From Macrostomum hystrix (Eukaryota; Animalia; Platyhelminthes), in NCBI GenBank assembly GCA_950097015.1, contig CATNEN010000002.1, forward strand, positions 6,820,001-6,884,000: a stretch of 64,000 nucleotides of DNA. Reading direction: 5' to 3'. The notes under the pieces are model-generated. The model was not told the DNA's origin and searched no databases. It was given only the letters and a program-made list of their open reading frames with translations. Made by a program: the position numbers and the translations under genes. This document shows, in pieces, positions 1,242 through 49,955 of this stretch; within the stretch, counting starts at the first letter, position 1; each line of letters begins with the position of its first letter.

Positions 1242-1945
1242 CTGAGATCTTGGGATCTGAGAACATGGGATCTGAAAACATGGGATCTGAAAATTTGAGA
1301 TCTGAGATCTTGGGATCTGAGATCTTGGGATCTGAGATCTTGGGATCTGAGATCTTGGGATCTGAGATCTTGGGATCTGAGATCTTGGGATCTGAGATCT
1401 TGGGATCTGAGATCTTGAGATCTGAGATCTTGGGATCTGAAAATTTGAGATCTGAGATCTTGGGATCTGAGATCTTGGGATCTGAGATCTTGGGATCTGA
1501 GATCTTGGGATCTGAGATCTTGGGATCTGAGATCTTGGGATCTGAGATCTTGGGATCTGAGATCTTGGGATCTGAGATCTTGGGATCTGAGATCTTGGGA
1601 TCTGAGATCTTGGGATCTGAGATCTTGGGATCTGAGATCTTGGGATCTGAGATCTTGGGATCTGAGATCTTGGGATCTGAGATCTTGGGATCTGAGATCT
1701 TGGGATCTGAGATCTTGGGATCTGAGATCTTGGGATCTGAGATCTTGGGATCTGAGATCTTGGGATCTGAGATCTTGGGATCTGAGATCTTGGGATCTGA
1801 GATCTTGGGATCTGAGATCTTGGGATCTGAGATCTTGGGATCTGAGATCTTGGGATCTGAGATCTTGGGATCTGAGATCTTGGGATCTGAGATCTTGGGA
1901 TCTGAGATCTTGGGATCTGAGATCTTGGGATCTGAGATCTTGGGG
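1242..1945. repeat. 15-bp tandem array (CTGAGATCTTGGGAT)n
   Basis: Near-perfect direct repeats; source of the RSQDL/SEILG pseudo-ORFs. Confidence 0.97.
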
Positions 1946-2223: not shown

Positions 2224-5200
2224 TCCTGGACAGACCAGCTGCTGCAGTGGGACCCGGCGCAGTACAAGGGCGTGTCCGAGGTTCGAATCCCGACTAGAGA
2301 CGTTTGGACTCCCGACATTGTGCTCTACAACTAGTGAGAAATTAAACACTTTTGATTTCACGTCCGAAAAAATTCGGACTTCTTTTATAAATAAAACAAA
2401 TCACCGCATCAACCTCACTCATCTCACAAATCTCACAAATCTCACAAATCTCACAAATCTCACAAATCTCACAAATCTCACAAATCTCACAAATCTCACA
2501 AATCTCACAAATCTCACAAATCTCACAAATCTCACAAATCTCACAAATCTCACAATTCTCACAAATCTCACAAATCTCACAAATCTCACAAATCTCACAA
2601 ATCTCACAATTCTCACAAATCTCACAAATCTCACAAATCTCACAAATCTCACAAATCTAAAAAATCTCACAAATCTTACAAATCTCACAATTCTCACAAT
2701 TCTCACAATTCTCACAAATCTCACAAATCTCACAAATCTCACACCGCAGCGCCGACGAGCGTCTCAAAGAGCAGCGCGAGGTGATGATCGTGACGAATCA
2801 CACGGGGCGGGTGATTTGGATTCCGCCGGCCATCTACAAATCCACCTGCCAGGTGGACATAAAAAACTTTCCGTTCGATCAGCAGAGCTGCCACCTGAAA
2901 TTCGGCAGCTGGACCTACGACGGCTTCAAGTTGGACATTCAGTTCTACCAGAACAAGTCCAACATCAGCACGGATGACTACATCCAGTCCAATGAGTGGC
3001 ACATTGTGGCCCTGCCAGCAACCCGCAATGTCAAATTCTACCCTTGCTGCAATGAGCCATACCCGGACCTCACATTCTTTCTGTTGTGAGTGCTCAGACC
3101 TTTGCTGACATTGCTGACAAATGCAACGTATACACTTCCCTACAGATCCCATGAAAACACTTCCCTACCCTTCAGATCCCATCCAGACACTTCCCTTCCC
3201 TTCACATCCCATGAAGACACTTTCCTTCCCTTCAGATCCCATGATGTTGCATACCCTTCAGATCCCATGATGTTCCATACCCTTCAGATCCCATGAAGAC
3301 ACTTCCCTACCCTTCAGATCCCATGAAGACACTTCCCTACCCTTCAGATCCCGTGATGATACTGCCCTACCCTTCAGATCCCGTGATGATACTTCCCTAC
3401 CCTTCAGATCCCGTGATGATACTTCCATACCCTTCAGATCCCGTGATGTTCCATACCCTTCAGATCCCGTGATGATACTTCTATACCCTTCAGATCCCGT
3501 GATGATACTTCCATACCCTTCAGATCCCATGATGATACTTGCCTACCCTTCAGATCCCGTGATGATACTTCCCTACCCTTCAGATCCCATGAAGACACTT
3601 CTATACCCTTCAGATCCCGTGATGATACTTCCCTACCCTTCAGATCCCGTGATGATACTTCCCTACCCTTCAGATCCCATGAAGACACTTCCCTACCCTT
3701 CAGATCCCGTGATGATACTTCCCTACCCTTCAGATCCCATGAAGACACTTCTATACCCTTTATATCCCATGAAGACACTTCCCTACCCTTCAGATCCCGT
3801 GATGATACTTCCATACCCTTCAGATCCCGTGATGTTCCATACCCTTCAGATCCCGTGATGATACTTCCATACCCTTCAGATCCCGTGATGTTCCATACCC
3901 TTCAGATCCCGTGATGATACTTCTATACCATTCAGATCCCGTGATGATACTTCCATACCCTTCAGATCCCGTGATGATACTTCCATACCCTTCAGATCCC
4001 GTGATGTTCCATACCCTTCAGATCCCGTGATGATACTTCTATACCATTCAGATCCCGTGATGATACTTCCATACCCTTCAGATCCCGTGATGATACTTCC
4101 CTACCCTTCAGATCCCGTGATGATACTTCCATACCCTTCAGATCCCGTGATGATACTTCCCTACCCTTTAGATCCCGTGATGATACTTCCATACCCATCA
4201 GATCCCGTGATGATACTTCCCTACCCTTCAGATCCCGTGATGATACTTCCCTACCCTTCAGATCCCGTGATGTTCCCTACCCATCAGATCCCGTGATGAT
4301 ACTTCCCTACCCTTCAGATCCCGTGATGATACTTCCCTACCCTTCAGATCCCGTGATGTTCCCTACCCTTCAGATCCCGTGATGATACTTCCATACCCAT
4401 CAGATCTCTATCAATCGTCTTCCACCCATACTAACCCTGTATCTCCCCGCTAGCCCATGATCCCAAAATGCCGATCTGCCACCCCGCAGTCTGAAGCGCA
4501 ACCCAGAGTTCTTCGCCTACCTGCTGGTGCTGCCCTGCGTGCTGCTGTCCTCCCTGACTTTGGTCATCTTCTGGCTGCCTCCTGAGAGCCCAGCCAAGAT
4601 GTTGCTAGGTAAGCAGTTGGAAGATTTGATATTTTTTTACATGAAAAATGTCTGACAGCTCCGTTTTTTTCCAACTCAGGCATGAACATTTTTGTCGCCT
4701 TCTTTCTGCTTTTGCTGCTCCTGGCTGAGTCAACTCCGTCAGCTTCAACAAGCGTGCCCTACATTGGTAAGATTTGGGATAAGCTGGTTTACCTCCGACG
4801 ATCCCTGTGGCGATTCCTGTGACGATTCCTGAGGCCATTCTTGGGAAGATTCCTGAAGCTTTTCTTGGGAAGATTCCTGAGGCCATTCTTGGGAAGATTC
4901 CTGAGGCTTTTCTTGGGAAGATTCCTGAGGCTTTTCTTTGGAAGATTCCTGAGGCTGTCCTTGGGGTGATCCCTGTTGCGATACCAGGGATGATTTCTGA
5001 GGCAATTTTCGGGACGATTCCTGAGTCTCTTCCACTGACAATTCCTGTGGGTACTCCTTGGACGCTTCCTGAGAGGATTACTTGGAATAAAAATAAATTA
5101 ATAATAATTATTATTATTACTTTAAAGTTTCTTTGGACGATTCCATGGAACCATTAGTAAGACAATTTTACGGGTGATTCCAAGAAAAGAATGTCCTGGG

Positions 5201-6271
5201 ACGATTGCAGAAACGAATCTTAAAAAGATTAAGTCTAGGATTCTTTGGGTGATATCTAGCGCTGGTCTAAGACGATTCCGTAAGCTTCTCAGTCTGATTT
5301 CTAAGAATTATTTTTTTCAAGTTTCTAGGCTACTTATGAAATAGACAATAAAAACAACGCATACTACTCGTCTGCAGGGTACTACTACTGCCTGAACATG
5401 CTGCTCATCACACTTTCCACCTTCTTGAGCGTCATAGTAATAAATTTGTACTTCCGTGGCGACAAGAGAAATCGACTGCCCGGCTGGCTCAAGAAGGTAC
5501 GATCGCTTTTTTTTATGCATTTTCTGTCATTAAATTGAGTTTTCGCAGTAAGAGATAAGGAGGGAAACACGAGTAAGGACGGGCCAGATGGTAAGAGCTA
5601 AAAAGGAGGGGGTGAGGAAAGATAGACGAGCAGCCAATCAGAGACGAGGGAAAGGAAAGAGAAGTGAATGTTATCTAAGAAGTTTAACACACAGAGGGAG
5701 AGAGGAGAATGTACAATAACAGAGCGCGCGAGCGTAAACAAACAAACAGAGCGTAAAAAGGGTGAAGCAATAATATTGACAGAATCGTCGAATAAAAAAA
5801 TATGGGCATTTGAAATACCCCGTGTTCTTTCTACTGCTGATAGAGGAAATTCCACTGAAAACTTTTCAGTGCATCGAGTTCTTGGCCAAGATGCTCTGCA
5901 TGCGGCAGGTGATTACCAAGAGTGAGACGGAGAAGCTGCGCCTCATTCGCTCTGAGATCAAGCACAACCGCCATCACAAGAAGAAGAAGCAGGGCCGGAG
6001 GGCGCAGGTTGTCGAGCTGGCGGGCGACAACAGCGGCGGCCCGACTTCGCTGACGTCGCAGCGGTTCCAGAACTACGTCGACGAGGCGTCGGTTCGAGAT
6101 TCAATCGCTGCGGCAACCGCGGCCGCTTCCGCTGGAGGCATCGGCGAACACTTCGGCGCGGGTGGCGGCGGCGGCGGCGGCTTCGACTATCAGCACCAGC
6201 AGCTGCTGCTCTCGCTTGGTGGCAACAGCGCCGCCAATCATCCCGGATATCCTGACGAGGCTCTGCTGATA

Positions 6272-6306
<35 letters not shown>

Positions 6307-6664
6307 TCTATTGAAGCAGGCCGAGGACTCGACAATCCACCTGACTCAGTCCATGGAGAGTGATCTGAGAGAGATCCGTCGGTCCATTCGCAACCTGATG
6401 ATGCGCCTGGCCCAGAAGGACGCCACGCAGAAGGTGGCGAGGGAGTGGCGCATGGTGGCGCTGGTGCTGGACAGAATCTTCTTCTGGTGTTACCTCATCA
6501 TCATCGTGACGGCGGGCTTCACCTTGCTAATGCCGACCACTCCAGCGGCCAGCCGGATTGAGGAGACCATCGAGAAGTACAGAGCGCAGGAGTACAAAAT
6601 CAAGCCAGCGCCAATGACCACCGCGCCACCGGAGCCCGCCGCAATGGGCTACTCAATGCTCTAG
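2224..6664 (+). CDS. Nicotinic acetylcholine receptor alpha-type subunit, predicted anion-selective clade; 5' exons lie outside the window
   Basis: Exons 2224-2333, 2750-3085, 4490-4608, 4680-4766, 5378-5496, 5870-6664, all GT-AG and phase-consistent. Motifs: loop [13 protein letters not shown], Cys-loop [15 protein letters not shown], loop B GSWTYDG, loop [10 protein letters not shown] (vicinal Cys), M1-M2 [30 protein letters not shown]4 [15 protein letters not shown]. No signal-peptide exon was found in the window. Confidence 0.95.
2419..2742. repeat. 9-bp intronic array (CTCACAAAT)n
   Basis: Direct repeats ending at the acceptor AG at 2748-2749. Confidence 0.95.
3135..4410. repeat. about 30-bp intronic minisatellite (CCCTTCAGATCCCGTGATGATACTTCCATA) with shorter deletion variants
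   Basis: Direct repeats inside nAChR intron 3086-4489. Confidence 0.95.
4800..5070. repeat. Degenerate 24-bp intronic repeat (GATTCCTGAGGCCATTCTTGGGAA)
   Basis: Direct repeats in nAChR intron 4767-5377. Confidence 0.85.
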
Positions 6665-7679
6665 TTCTAGAACTCGGGCAACGTTTGAGCAGCCGTAAAA
6701 TTTTCATTTATTCATCGATATCTGACAAGTTATTTGAATTTTCTAGACCTATTGTTAAGGTATCGATGCGATTAACTAAGTAGATAGAAATTGACCTGTT
6801 TGTCCATTGTTGAAACCCAGTTTCTATATTGAGAAAAACGTGTTCAATTCTGAGATTCAATATGAGTGTTCGGGATTTGAATTCAACTGGATTGTTGAGT
6901 TAGTAGGGATAAGAGAACCAAAGTGAGTGTTGAGCTAGGGATTTGAAATTCAAGGTGAGTGTTGTGGTTAAGATTTGAGATCAAGATTAGCAGAAATTAA
7001 GTCATAAAAAACTACCAATAACAAATATAAGGTTTCGACCATAGACAAACAAACAAATTAATATCAGTAATCCATTATTGTGGAATGACTTAAACGTAAA
7101 ATACAAGTACACATTTTTATGTATCTGTAAACATTTTCCGCTACTTGTAGTGTTAATCTAGAGTAGCTTTCTCTGCGCAGAATGTCCTGTCATAATGTTA
7201 AAAATGATCCATTTTTTACTGTTCTGATCATATTTTATTTCGCTACTTTTTGAACTAAAGGGTTGTTTGTAGAGAACCTATTCATTAGCTGTCATCGCCG
7301 TTGACAAAGAATTTACCGATCGTCATAAAAAATCTAAAAAAGCACACATGATGCTACTTACCAGTAGGCGTATGCGTGTAGGATGATATCAATTTTTGTA
7401 TCTTAAATAGTCTCGTATCGTACTGTAAATGCCAGTTAGTTCAATGTGATTTTCGCACTCGTCATTCAAACAAGACATTTAGTTTTTCATGCATTGCCGA
7501 AAAACATACTGTATGCAGCCTTGATCAATAAAAAACGCTTGAAGAAATTTACCCTCTTGGATTTCATGACTCATACGAAGTTATAGTCTTTTCGATTCAA
7601 TACAAGTTTTCATAAGTTTTTTTTATTATATGGCGTGTTTATAAGACTTGTGAGAGATCATTGAACATGATTCAACGGA

Positions 7680-8414
7680 GCCTGCTACGATTCTACGGAT
7701 CCTGCCACGATTCTACGGATCCTGTTGCGATTCTACGGATCCAGCTACGATTCTACGGATCCTGCTACGATTCTACTGGTCCTGCTACGATTCTACGGAT
7801 CCTGCCACGATTCTACGGATCCTGCCACGATTCTACAATCCTGCTGCGATTATACGAATCCTGTTGCGATTCTGCAGATCCTGCCACGATTCTACGGATC
7901 CTGCTGCGATTCTAGGAATCCTGCTGCGATTCTAGGAATCCTGTTGCGATTCTAGGAATCCTGCTGCGATTCTAGGAATCCTGTTGCGATTCTAGGAATC
8001 CTGCTGCGATTCTAGGAATCCTGTTGCGATTCTAGGAATCCTGCTGCGATTCTAGGAATCCTGCTGCGATTCTAGGAATCCTGCTGCGATTCTAGGAATC
8101 CTGTTGCGATTCTACGGATCCAGCAACGATTCTACGAATCCTGCTGCGATTCTACGAATCCTGCTACGATTCTTCGGATCCTGCTGCGATTCTACGGATC
8201 CTGTTGCGATTCTACGGATCCAGCTGCGATTCTACTGATCCTGCTACGATTCTACGAATCCTGTTGCGATTCTGCGGATCCTGCTCCGATTCTACGAATC
8301 CTGTTGCGATTCTGCAGATCCTGCTGCGATTCTACGAATCCTGCCACGATTCTGCGGATCCTGCTACGATTCTACTGGTCCTGCTACGATTCTACGGATC
8401 CTGCTGCGATTCTT
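7680..8414. repeat. 20-bp tandem array (GATCCTGCTGCGATTCTACG)n between the convergent nAChR and GALC 3' ends
   Basis: Direct repeats with variants. Confidence 0.95.
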
Positions 8415-9081: not shown

Positions 9082-12000
9082 TTAAAACTTCCCAGCCGCC
9101 AGTTTCTCAACCGAGAGGTCCTTGAAGTAGGCGACGCCGAACATCGACGTGCCGACGCCAGCCCAGCCGGATGGCAGCGACTCCCAGCCAGCCGTGCCGT
9201 TGTAGGCCAGCTGGCCGTTGACTTGCAACTGGACTAGACCCTTCAGCGACTGCAGTGACATCAAGATCCAGCTGTCACGCTTGAGACCGTCAAGCATTGT
9301 CGAATAGACAGCTTGATTCATGCCTGCGGGTTGTGAAAATTGCGTTTGTTATCAAGGCATCGATGCAAGTCTACCAAGCTATCAAGGTGGGAGTGATTGG
9401 CAGATTGGCAGTCTAACGCATCGATTCCCTTGCGAGACCAAATTTATTTGGTGGCGCAGCCGCAGAGAAAAGGCTTGGGGGGTTTGTCATGCAACTTCCG
9501 CATTTGAGGGCCAACCTCCAAAGCACAGTGAGAGTGTACAATGAAGATGAGAAACTCAGGGCAGATGTACACACAGGGTGGTTGGCCCCGAATTAATGTG
9601 GCCTCACCAATGATTTTAGCTCAGGGTCGTTACTGCTCGCTACTCAGCCCCAATTTTTTTATCACTTTTTCAGTCCAACCTCCATCTCCCAAGAGTGTCC
9701 TCAATTAGAGTGTCCTCAATTAGAGTGTGCTCAATTAGAGTGTGCTCAATTAGAGTGTGCTCAATTAGAGTGTGCTCATCCAGAGTCTTTATATTCAGAG
9801 TGTGCTCACCGTAGTCCTTGGTCATCAGCAGCAGAGCACAGTAGTTGCGGCATCCGGGTCCCTCGAACAGGAACAGCCAGGCGAAGATGCCAGTGGCCTG
9901 CGTTAGCGAAGCGCCGGCCGCGTTGGCCCGCAGCGTCAGGTACACGCCGGTGCTGGCGTTGCCCCAGCTCGGCAATAAAACTGAGCAGTTGATTCGCGAG
10001 TCAGTCCAGGTGTAGTCTCCTATGAGAGCGCCAGGTCTGGCGAATCTGGGATAGCACGTGTCAATAGGCGGCTGAGTCACCACCTGGGCCATCGCCCGCT
10101 GGCCGTCCTGGCTGTTTCGGACCTCCCAGACTCCGGCCTGGGGCGACAGGTAGCGTGGCTCTTCCTGATCGCGAAGGTCTGCGGGCGAGAGATGGCGTCG
10201 CTAAAGCCCTATAAGCTGGTAGTGCTCCCACTGAATCTCACCTGAGATCTGCCTTTCTTCCCGTGAGATCTGTCTTTCCTCCCCTGAGATCTGTCTTTCC
10301 TCCCCTGAGATCTGTCTTTCCTCCCCTGAGATCTCCAGTTTCTCACCTTAGATCTCTTATTTTTCATCCCAGATCTATGTTCTCTTACCTGGGACCACTC
10401 TTTTCTCACCTGAGATCTGTCCTTTCTCACCTGAGATCTGTACTTTCTCACCTGAGATCTGTCCTTTCTCAACTGAGATCTGTCCTTTCTCAACTGAGAT
10501 CTGTCCTTTCTCACCTGAGATCTGTCCTTTCTCGCCTGAGATCTCTCTTTCGAACCTTAGATCTCAGATTTTCATTTGAGATCGCTCTTTTCTAACCTGA
10601 AATCATTATCTAATTTGCTCACCTGAAATCCTAATGATCCTATCTTTTTTCTCGCCTAATGCTGTTTTTCTTTTTTCTGTTCTTGTCCTAGTGTGCTCTC
10701 ACCCGAGATATCCTCTCGATAGACATTGGGAAAGCTGGTCTCGTTCATCGGCGCCTTCTCGTCTACGATCTGCGACGGATCGTTCGTTGGCCCAAGATCG
10801 TCGGCCGTCGTCAGGGTCAGAACCGTGTTCTTATTCAGGGTCAGCTTTAAAGTGCCATTTGTGACCTAGAAAACGTTATAGTGTTCGAATTATTCTACTG
10901 TCAGTAGCGCGAACGATATTTAGGTGCTAAAATTAAGAAAAAACAAGTTGCATTTACCAAAAAGTCTGGCAGTTTTTGAAATAGGCGAGCTCTACGGTTG
11001 GCGTAGTCGAACACAGACTGGCGCACTTTTAATCGCGTAACTGACGACTAAAATAAAGCGTGCGGGTTTAGTGGCGCGAATTCAAATTCGCATGCAGAAA
11101 TAAGGAAATCAAATTGGATAAAAAAGATTATGCGCTTAATTACCAATTTGTCCTTGAACTTAAGCACTATAGTTTGCACATCCGCGATGGGATATTGTGG
11201 CATCGAGTAGAAGCAATGCGCGTCCTGCGGATCCATCGTCTCGATCACTATGGTGACAAGGCTGGCGTCCGGGGACACATACGTGATGTAGCTGCCGTTG
11301 CCAGGCAGCAACCCGCTCCCGCTGCCAACTGGCAGGAATCGCCAGCCGGGCTCCGCGAAGTGGGTGTGGTGCGCTGCGGATGACGGACGGACATTGGGGT
11401 GGGGATAACTGTAGAGGCCATTCCGAGCATGGGATCTTGATTTTGGGATACAGGCTCTCGACTCTCAGTTTGCGATTCTGGTGTCAATAAAACAATGCTG
11501 GCTCACCAGTAGCCCAAACTGGTGACTTGACCTGGTAGTTCCCTGACCATGGCTCCCTGGCCGACATCAGGCTGTTGTCCCAGTAGGGAAAGTCTTTATA
11601 GTAGCTGCTCAGCAGGTTCCACGCGATCGCTCTACGAAATTAAATATTAACCTCGTATTTCTTTCTTATTTTCAACAAGAAAGCAGAGGGTTTATTCTTA
11701 AAAGCTGCAACTATATACTTGCGTAAGAATATGTAAAAAAGCATACAAAAAATACCTCCACATAGTTTGAATTGTGCACCCACCACCCCAAACACCAGTC
11801 TACAAAGCTAAATTGCCGCACCCACCACCCAAAACACCAGTCTATAAAGTTAAATTGCCGCGCCCACCACCCAAAACACCAGTCTATAAAGTTAAATTGC
11901 CGCGCCCACCACCCCAAAAACCAGTCTACAAAGCTAAATTGCCGCACCCACCACTCCAAAAACCAGTCTATAAAGTTAAATTGCCGCGCCCACCACCCAA

Positions 12001-23253: not shown

Positions 23254-26200
23254 ATGGATCCAAATATTTTACATAAGCAATGGTTTTCTGGTCTTATACC
23301 AAAATACAGGGCTAAAAGAATAGACGATCTTCTTAAGCACAGTCATGATAGAGTTAAAGGACTTAAAGGGCTTAAAAATATGGTAAGATTTGTGTGCATC
23401 TCAGACATCCACACACCAAGCCGTATCAGAAAAGAAAGGTGAGCCGACTTAATTGTAATGATGTCTTTTGTAGGCCTAGTAATATAGCAAGCTGCGCTAA
23501 TGCGCAATAATAGGTTGTGTTGGCCACTGGTGCAGTGGTGGGCGTTATTGTCCAAGTTTGTCTTATTGCATTGCAAATTTTCAACTTATACTATCGTTGC
23601 ATAGCTTCGATTTCTATTTTAAAGTAGCTATAAAATGATAAAAATAGGTTATACTAATTTTTTTTATGTCATGAAGCCTCAATTAAGCCGCCTAAAAACC
23701 TTCAATGCCTCCTACTACAGGTTGTTTCTTCTAAACAGAACATCTATTCATATCAGCTGATTTGTGATAAATACTTCTAATTAGCTTATTAATTATAAAC
23801 AAAAAATGCTACCTATAATAGTATAAATAACTACAAGGCCATTGCTTATGCCTTTGTCTTTTAACTTGCTAAATGATCATTAATGTCATATAATTTGCAT
23901 GATACTATTTCCCATTCTTGGTTTAAACTTTGTTGTAACTAGAACTAGGCCTAGGCCTATTTTTGTTTGAAATTGTCATTCATGAGTGTAATAATTATCT
24001 AGGCCAAGTTTCTGTATCACATACTAATGCCATTTCACTTGACTTATACACATTGGACAGTATACTTCTATTAACAGTAGAACTACCAAGGGGGGATTCC
24101 CCCACTGACAATTTTTTTTGCTGCACCTGAACGGAATAATGCAAGCACACAAAACTCAAGAACATAGGCCAACTTTTTGTTGCACATCTTCTGAAACAAG
24201 AAACAAGTCACCAGCTCTTCAGACCATCGAGATATTCAATGTTTCTGGCCGAAGGTCCGATTTTTCCCATAAGAGCTAGTGTATTTAATACACCCCTATA
24301 CACTAATTTGCACTGCACCTCAGTGCGGCCTTTCCAGACTTTCAAACTTTATCAGCATGTCACCCAAATGTGCCTGCATCATCTCTGTCTTTGGTGGTCA
24401 CCTACCTTTATCTAGATGGACTGCGAGACCTTTAAATGCAAAAAAATGTGGAAATAGGCCACTCTGGACACCCTGATGCGAATTTCAAAAATTTCACTGC
24501 TGAAGCCTAAATATTAGGTGCAGCTCAACTACAGTACACCATCGCCTAGTCTGTCAACCAATCAGTCACCTTAGCTTTCAGGTTAGCTTTCAGGCGCTGC
24601 CAAAAATGTTCTCAGGAGGGAATTCCCCCCCCTTGGTATAAAAACGGATGGCAAAATGGCTTGGAAGTCCTACTGTTAACAGTTGATAGACCTATTGGAT
24701 ATTTTTAATACCTCTTATTTATGTATTTTCTATACCTTCCAAAATATTCAATCAATGCTATGACAACTTAGCGATCAATGTGGCTATTATTGTTAATTAG
24801 ATTGTATTGGTTTTATTGTCATTTTATACTATTGAACCAACATGCATTTGCCATAGAGGTTTATACAGAGCTATGTAAATTGTCATTTGAGCCAGTGTCT
24901 TTGAAAAGAATTTCTGAATATTTTGATGATGCAGAAATTGTTTATGTCGGCTGGCTTTGAAAGTTAGTTAAGGGTAGACTATTTTGATCTACCTTAGGTA
25001 TATGGTGGACTTTTGTGAAATTCAGTCATTTGGTTAGGTAGATATATAATTAACTATATAATGGATACTTAAATAACCTGTAGTCTTTCCTCAGGGGCAA
25101 AATAGCATAGTCTTTCAACTATTAACCAAGTCAGTATACTATGACACTTTCTTAGTAATTGTGGTATGAAATAGAATTTATAGTTACTCGTCCTGTTTAC
25201 CCTAAGATGTTGATTATTTGATTTTTCCGTATAAACTTTGTAGACTGACCTGGGAGTTTCCACCTGGCGATGTACTCTTGGTGGCTGGCGACCTAACCCT
25301 GCATGGATCCAAACGGGAGGTGGAGTCAGTAGCCAACTGGCTTAGTGAAACTCCCTACTCACAGAGAGTTGTCATTGCTGGCAATCACGACTTCTGCTTG
25401 GATCCAGACGATGATGACTACTCACCTGAGACTGAGGCATCACTGAGGCAGCAGTGCACCTACCTCAGGAACTCCAGCGCACTGCTGTTTGACAGCATTA
25501 GGGTCTATGGATCTCCGGTGACTCCCGAGTTTCACAGCATGGCATTCAATTTGCCAAGAGGGGATCGGATCAATGAGGTCAGCTATGCGGCTGCTTCAGG
25601 GGGGATTTCTGGTAGCCAGTTTTTATTGGCAATTAAATCCACCTTAATACAGGCTGTCTAGATAATCCCCTAAATACAGATTCTCTAGATAATCCCCTAA
25701 ATACAGATTAATCTGGATAATCCCCTAAATTCAGGTTCTCTAGATAATCCCCTAAATACAGGTTCTCTAGATAATCCCCTAAATACTTGTTGTCTAGATA
25801 ATCCCCTAAATACAGGTTCTCTAGATAATCCCCTAAACACAGGCACCTCTAGATAATCCCCGAAATACAGGTTCTCTAGATAATCCCCTAAATACAGGTT
25901 CTCTAGATAATCCCCTAAACACAGGCACCTCTAGATAATCCCCGAAATACAGGTTCTCTAGATAATCCCCTAAATTCAGGTTCTCTAGATAATCCCCTAA
26001 ATACAGATTCTCTAGATAATCCCCTAAATACAGATTAATCTGGATAATCCCCTAAATTCAGGTTCTCTAGATAATCCCCTAAATACAGGTTCTCTAGATA
26101 ATCCCCTAAATACTTGTTGTCTAGATAATCCCCTAAATACAGGTTCTCTAGATAATCCCCTAAACACAGGCACCTCTAGATAATCCCCGAAATACAGGTT

Positions 26201-29817: not shown

Positions 29818-49955
<20,138 letters not shown>

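Follow-up and report, generated by a model that had tools for sequence, protein, structure and literature searches.

What kind of channel is encoded by a flatworm receptor gene that combines the binding loops of a nicotinic acetylcholine receptor (nAChR) with the pore linker of a chloride channel? The question is raised by positions 4490-4766 of the window, by which we mean the whole stretch of 64,000 nucleotides of Macrostomum hystrix DNA that was analyzed. Judged from sequence comparison, the gene most probably encodes an alpha-type nAChR subunit of the spiralian Pro-Ala clade, which would act as an acetylcholine-gated chloride channel, possibly as a homomer. We give this reading a probability of roughly 85%.

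The segment at 4490-4766 is not a single open frame. It is made up of two exons (4490-4608 and 4680-4766) and the 71-base intron between them, all belonging to a Cys-loop receptor gene on the plus strand. An earlier note on this DNA had delimited the segment, and both of its end points, 4490 and 4766, proved to be exact exon ends. The parts of the gene that lie in the window are as follows.

2224..2333, plus strand: exon A, carrying two loops of the ligand-binding domain, D (SWTD...LQW) and A (WTPDIVLYN)
2750..3085, plus strand: exon B, carrying the Cys-loop, loop B (GSWTYDG) and loop C with its vicinal cysteines; donor TT/GTGAGT
4490..4608, plus strand: exon C, carrying the pre-M1 region, M1, the M1-M2 linker LPPESPAK and then M2 positions 1'-3' (Met-Leu-Leu)
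4609..4679, plus strand: intron between exons C and D, 71 bases, GT..AG, interrupting M2 between 3' and 4'
4680..4766, plus strand: exon D, carrying the remainder of M2 from Gly 4' on (with Asn 6', Val 9', Ala-Glu 19'/20'), then the M2-M3 loop
5378..5496, plus strand: exon E, carrying M3 and the beginning of the intracellular loop; junctions 4766/5378 and 5496/5870 from spliced contigs, exon also matched by tblastn
5870..6664, plus strand: last coding exon, carrying the intracellular loop (with Gly and Gln runs), M4 and the C-tail; stop codon at 6662-6664

Together these exons give the architecture of a Cys-loop receptor, with a ligand-binding domain that contains a 13-residue Cys-loop followed by M1, M2, M3, and M4. 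Pfam Neur_chan_LBD was matched by exon A (1.6e-11) and exon B (4.1e-32), and Neur_chan_memb by exon C (6.2e-07) and by the last coding exon (8.5e-08), which is 81% identical to its Macrostomum lignano counterpart. Exon A was matched at 2224-2331 when the M. lignano ortholog was used as a tblastn query; it is bordered by acceptor ccag/t and donor TA/GTGAG and ends in phase 2, such that TA + C makes Tyr. Exon C lies between acceptor cag/t and donor G/GTAAGC. With one tblastn match per exon, there were no extra copies of the pore exons within the gene. A further coding exon lies upstream at G000:C2:6815725-6815922, about 4.1 kb ahead of window position 1, and it was the only one to turn up when 20 kb of upstream sequence was searched for a signal-peptide exon.

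Assembled contigs from three public runs (X2, X3, and X5) support the gene model at 100% identity, joining 3085/4490, 4608/4680, 4766/5378, and 5496/5870. They contain exons only and skip 4609-4679, 4767-5377, and 5497-5869, each of which begins with GT and ends with AG. The loose end of a contig ahead of 4490 consists of the final 30 bases of exon B, and at the last coding exon contigs run over 5868-6262 and 6313-6819, with coverage extending into the 3' untranslated region to about 6819. All of these contigs come from one study whose run kinds are not on record; because the introns have been spliced out, we infer that they originate from RNA and represent spliced transcripts of the receptor gene. 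Most of this single-copy, transcribed Macrostomum gene lies within the window.

The introns and flanks of this gene are densely occupied by minisatellites, with periods of 9-42 bases (9, 15, 24, and 30 bases among those in introns) and up to 47 copies. Arrays were recorded at window positions 1242-1944, 2421-2743, 3138-4406, 4800-5032, 7669-8413, 10236-10604, and 11779-12969. The intron ahead of exon A is about 6.3 kb long, vs about 0.2 kb in M. lignano, and the intron ahead of exon C is about 1.4 kb, vs about 0.76 kb. Because of the intronic arrays, many spurious long open reading frames arise on both strands, and one might ask whether the receptor frame is itself a chance product of repeat-rich DNA, or else a decaying gene copy. 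The spliced contigs of the three runs argue strongly against this, as does the pattern of substitution. Across the 253 codons of exons A-E, there are 83 silent and 6 replacement changes relative to the M. lignano ortholog, every intron position is common to both species, and the reading frame is free of stops and frameshifts. We therefore rejected a pseudogene or repeat-born frame, on the basis of the spliced contigs and the 83:6 ratio, as having almost no chance of being correct.

The comparison with M. lignano also speaks to constraint on the pore. Alignment with the locus in that species (L045 in GCA_002269645.1) is confined to exons, at 78-90% DNA identity, and the intron that splits M2 sits at the same position as 4609-4679. 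In exons B-D, identity between the window gene and its M. lignano ortholog (P0235, PAA85942.1) reaches 99-100%, with 99% in exon B and 100% in exon D. Silent codon changes number 13 in exon C and 12 in exon D, and the 25 in these pore exons are accompanied by no replacement changes, a pattern that points to strong purifying selection on the pore. Errors were noticed in two public gene models of relatives. In one (P0008, M. lignano A0A1I8FLR1), the ligand-binding part is fused to a "GPS domain" protein and the model reads into the intron past M1, while in the other (P0004, UPI0007A2ED7B) the 28-residue M2 exon is omitted and PAKMVLG is joined directly to YYYCLNM.

Other coding sequence was seen elsewhere in the window. 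On the minus strand, 21645-22346 is a single open frame of 234 amino acids in which a nucleoside diphosphate kinase domain (2.7e-45) precedes a Dpy-30 motif (1.2e-16), the architecture of ciliary or flagellar NME5-type kinases. Two adjoining open frames at 13626-14490 on the plus strand correspond to the opening and closing portions of the Snf7 (ESCRT-III/CHMP) family and probably represent two exons of a single gene. There is also an exon with an immunoglobulin domain at 33045-33449 on the minus strand (ig, 8.7e-07) and a weak calcineurin-like phosphoesterase exon at 25218-25658 on the plus strand (7.9e-05).

The pore of the receptor was read by alignment. The linker LPPESPAK aligns ungapped with LPADSGEK of a fish alpha7-like protein (P0101). 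Specifically, the distance from the M1 Pro-Cys to Lys 0' is equal in the two proteins, so that no gap is required, and the Pro-Cys, Gly 4', and Ala-Glu 19'/20' all stay in register. The resulting assignment is Pro -2', Ala -1', Lys 0', Leu 2', Asn 6', Val 9', Leu 13', and Glu 20', which confirms the residues that had been proposed for the linker and for -2', -1', 6', and 9'. At -1', where cation-selective alpha7-like receptors have the Glu of the intermediate negative ring, the window gene has Ala. Replacement of Gly-Glu by Pro-Ala at -2'/-1' is the hallmark of the family and is treated as the determinant of anion selectivity (PMC4055736).

The binding site is that of an alpha-type nicotinic subunit. 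The loop A Tyr, WTY, and YPCC on which the earlier note had based its description as alpha-nicotinic were found in exons A and B, outside 4490-4766. Alignment with the alpha7-like protein and with subunit B of Lymnaea stagnalis recovered all of the aromatic residues of the acetylcholine site, namely the loop A Tyr, the loop B Trp, the loop C Tyr/YxCC...Tyr, and the loop D Trp. The predicted site thus appears complete on both its principal and complementary faces.

Less can be made of the remaining pore residues. Asn 6' and Val 9' had been taken as signs of nonstandard gating, but they are majority residues of the clade. Among 142 distinct Pro-Ala sequences, the M2 consensus reads Asn 6' (91 sequences), Phe 8', Val 9' (80 sequences), Ala 10', Phe 11', and Phe 12', and the same two residues occur in Lymnaea B, which gates in oocytes. 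Because they are typical of the clade and present in a functional channel, Asn 6' and Val 9' are no pointer to unusual gating, and we dropped that suggestion. Only one pore residue of the window gene is uncommon, namely Leu 2', which occurs in 7 of the 142 sequences and is located at the pore's narrow end.

Where, then, does the gene belong? Exons were queried individually rather than as a joined protein. When only the ligand-binding exon was compared with 1.84 billion representatives, 7485 relatives were found. The search returned mainly Pro-Ala subunits of flatworms and molluscs, and nearly all of the top matches that include M1 had PPESPAK-like linkers. The named relatives among the matches came from trematodes, a cestode, gastropods, and cephalopods. 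Word searches added full-length relatives, including the M. lignano ortholog, Lymnaea B, I, and K, and Biomphalaria "type B," along with proteins of annelid, brachiopod, nemertean, bryozoan, and rotifer origin. Among solved structures, the best match to exon B was the human alpha7 nAChR (3.5e-30), and the 60 best chains were nAChRs or acetylcholine-binding proteins only.

Two trees built from alignments free of pore residues agree with these searches. The first used 111 residues of exon B and included 26 Gly-Glu sequences, all of which fell on one side of a branch (support 98/79; present in 99% of bootstrap trees), while the window gene lay on the opposite side, adjoining its M. lignano ortholog. 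The second used full-length proteins, with the M. lignano ortholog standing in for the window gene, and excluded 66 alignment columns, which run from the linker through M2 into the beginning of the M2-M3 loop; here the split between Gly-Glu and Pro-Ala proteins was supported at 95/99. Lymnaea B, I, and K were in the same Pro-Ala clade as the window gene in both trees. The Gly-Glu proteins that define these splits were few (26-31) and picked by similarity, the trees lack a GABA/glycine outgroup, and Lymnaea subunit F is absent from the comparison set. In the second tree, the Macrostomum ortholog fell inside a flatworm clade (100/100) together with schistosome proteins resembling SmACC-1 and SmACC-2, and this clade was itself part of a larger one with Lymnaea B, I, and K. 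These results uphold the earlier assignment to a lophotrochozoan Pro-Ala clade, and with Lymnaea B, I, and K and the SmACC-like proteins included, the gene did not cluster with cation-selective alpha subunits. By descent, then, the window gene can be placed in the already known spiralian family of Pro-Ala nicotinic-type subunits (Lymnaea B/F/I/K and the SmACCs).

Within the flatworm clade, the full-length tree placed Macrostomum, weakly (85/65), as sister to two neodermatan groups. Proteins of the first are about 900 amino acids long and alpha-type (YPCC), and they include a 915-amino-acid protein of Schistosoma mansoni (P0359). Those of the second are about 610 amino acids long and without vicinal cysteines, and they include a 613-amino-acid S. 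mansoni protein and Cryptocotyle "acetylcholine-gated chloride channel-2." PMC4055736 describes SmACC-1 as alpha-type and 92 kDa and SmACC-2 as non-alpha. Because the presence or absence of YxCC and the size class fit these descriptions, the 915- and 613-amino-acid proteins are probably SmACC-1 and SmACC-2, an identification made by those two features rather than by accession.

The members of this family with reported function allow a prediction for the window gene. Lymnaea B (ABA60381.1) has the same LPPESPAK linker, YxCC, Asn 6', Val 9', and Ala-Glu 19'/20', and from -5' to 21' its pore differs from that of the window gene only at 2' (Leu in Macrostomum, Gln in Lymnaea) and 13' (Leu and Val, respectively). 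Exon identities to Lymnaea B and to the alpha7-like protein were 59/49 (the ligand-binding exon), 72/49, 79/32 (exon D), and 73/22%. Lymnaea B nevertheless belongs to the molluscan rather than the flatworm branch, its ligand-binding exon is only 59% identical, and its intracellular loop is much shorter (the protein has 527 amino acids). It is reported to conduct anions (PMC4193815, citing van Nierop 2005, and PMC4055736) and, in PMC4193815, to be a homomer opened by cholinergic agonists. Closer kin are SmACC-1 (Smp_176310, KF694748; MacDonald et al. 2014) and its trematode orthologs of ~900 amino acids, which share the flatworm clade (100/100), have the alpha-type YPCC and an identical linker, and are 82-93% identical to the window gene in exons C and D. 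The Macrostomum gene differs in branching, again with weak support (85/65), ahead of the split between SmACC-1-like and SmACC-2-like proteins and in having a shorter intracellular loop than SmACC-1. According to PMC4055736, SmACC-1 forms a chloride channel as a homomer, and cholinergic agonists open it. The SmACC-2 group (Smp_142690, KF694749), to which the Cryptocotyle protein belongs, shares the Pro-Ala linker and the flatworm clade and was sister to the window gene in the tree of the ligand-binding exon (94/82), yet its members lack vicinal cysteines and have Ser 4' and Lys 16' in M2, where the window gene has YPCC and Gly 4'.

Two other kinds of receptor invite comparison. Vertebrate alpha7 (e.g., PDB 7KOO and 8C9X) is the best match among solved structures and has the same aromatic box and the same spacing from M1 to 0', but it reads Gly-Glu-Lys where the window gene reads Pro-Ala-Lys, is 32% identical in M2, and falls on the opposite side of the main split in the trees. 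The ACC-1 family of Caenorhabditis elegans has the physiology predicted here, in which acetylcholine opens a chloride channel, but the nematode type is of separate origin. PMC4055736 groups the ACC-1 family with GABA and glycine receptors, while the solved-structure matches to exon B of the window gene were restricted to nicotinic receptors and acetylcholine-binding proteins and give no sign of a ligand-binding domain of GABA/glycine descent.

An argument can be made that the channel is cation-selective or poorly selective despite its Pro-Ala motif, with Leu 2', Leu 13', Glu -4', and Glu 20' overriding it. Galzi et al. are said to have needed more than one change to convert alpha7 in 1992, reportedly combining a Pro insertion with Glu -1' to Ala and Val 13' to Thr, and Leu 2' is uncommon among Pro-Ala sequences. 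Yet the pore is nearly identical to that of anion-conducting Lymnaea B, which likewise has Glu -4' and Glu 20', and the ring of Glu at -1' that cation channels require is missing. We consider such an override very unlikely. The chloride selectivity of the window receptor is predicted from motif and kinship only, and an acetylcholine-gated chloride channel is what would be expected because the -1' Glu ring is absent and the constriction is Pro-Ala-Lys. In the proposed mechanism, five subunits would assemble into one channel gated by acetylcholine. The channel may be a homomer, because the gene supplies both faces of the binding site, as SmACC-1 and Lymnaea B do. Acetylcholine binding at the interface between loops A-C and loop D would open the M2 gate. 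With the negative intermediate ring gone and Pro-Ala-Lys at the constriction, chloride rather than cations would pass, and acetylcholine would thereby inhibit the cell.

The genome offers no shortage of potential partners. A search with exon C found at least 15 further loci with the linker LPPE[ST]PAK at 64-74% identity, below which identity fell sharply to loci with Gly-Glu-Lys (at least 25 loci, 33-49%). Three examples of the further Pro-Ala loci are listed here.

C38:20668836-20668949: further Pro-Ala locus
C29:4719906-4720022: further Pro-Ala locus
C1:18443132-18443245: further Pro-Ala locus

Two of the further loci have the linker FCLPPEAPAK. Including the window gene, the genome has at least 16 Pro-Ala loci, which suggests a large Pro-Ala subfamily in this free-living flatworm. 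With this many loci, heteromers are possible, and SmACC-2-like relatives without vicinal cysteines resemble non-alpha partners. It could thus be that the window subunit is inactive alone, either as an obligate partner in heteromers with subunits from some of the 15 or more other Pro-Ala loci or because it is gated by another ligand, such as choline or another amine. However, the window gene retains YxCC and every aromatic residue of the principal and complementary faces, and the subunits of known function nearest to it, SmACC-1 and Lymnaea B, act as homomers gated by cholinergic agonists. We regard a subunit that is silent alone as improbable, albeit less so than a cation-selective pore, and continue to favor an acetylcholine-gated chloride channel that may be homomeric.

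No recent duplicate of the window gene was found in the genome, where the next ligand-binding exon is 49-58% identical. It is conceivable, at somewhat less than even odds, that in Macrostomum a single gene, never duplicated, corresponds to both the SmACC-1-like (alpha) and SmACC-2-like (non-alpha) groups, having kept the ancestral alpha-type site along with its uncommon Leu 2'. If this is true, and if the receptor is a homomeric acetylcholine-gated chloride channel, it would display the ancestral state of flatworms and offer a genetically tractable, free-living model for the channels of parasites. The gene had been proposed as a target relevant to anthelmintics; because Macrostomum is free-living, it can serve at most as a model for parasite channels rather than as a drug target itself.

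The family itself had been described beforehand, in 2005 from Lymnaea and in 2014 from Schistosoma. The M. lignano ortholog was already public as well, labeled only "hypothetical protein" (PAA85942.1). Our understanding of how Pro-Ala channels select ions is unchanged by the window gene. What our analysis adds is a verified gene model with evidence of expression, an indication of strong constraint on the pore, and a tally of Pro-Ala loci, at least 16, for the genome of a free-living flatworm. The placement obtained here also suggests that two groups of schistosome subunits have a single Macrostomum gene as their counterpart. Macrostomum could therefore become a convenient model of inhibitory cholinergic signaling in flatworms.
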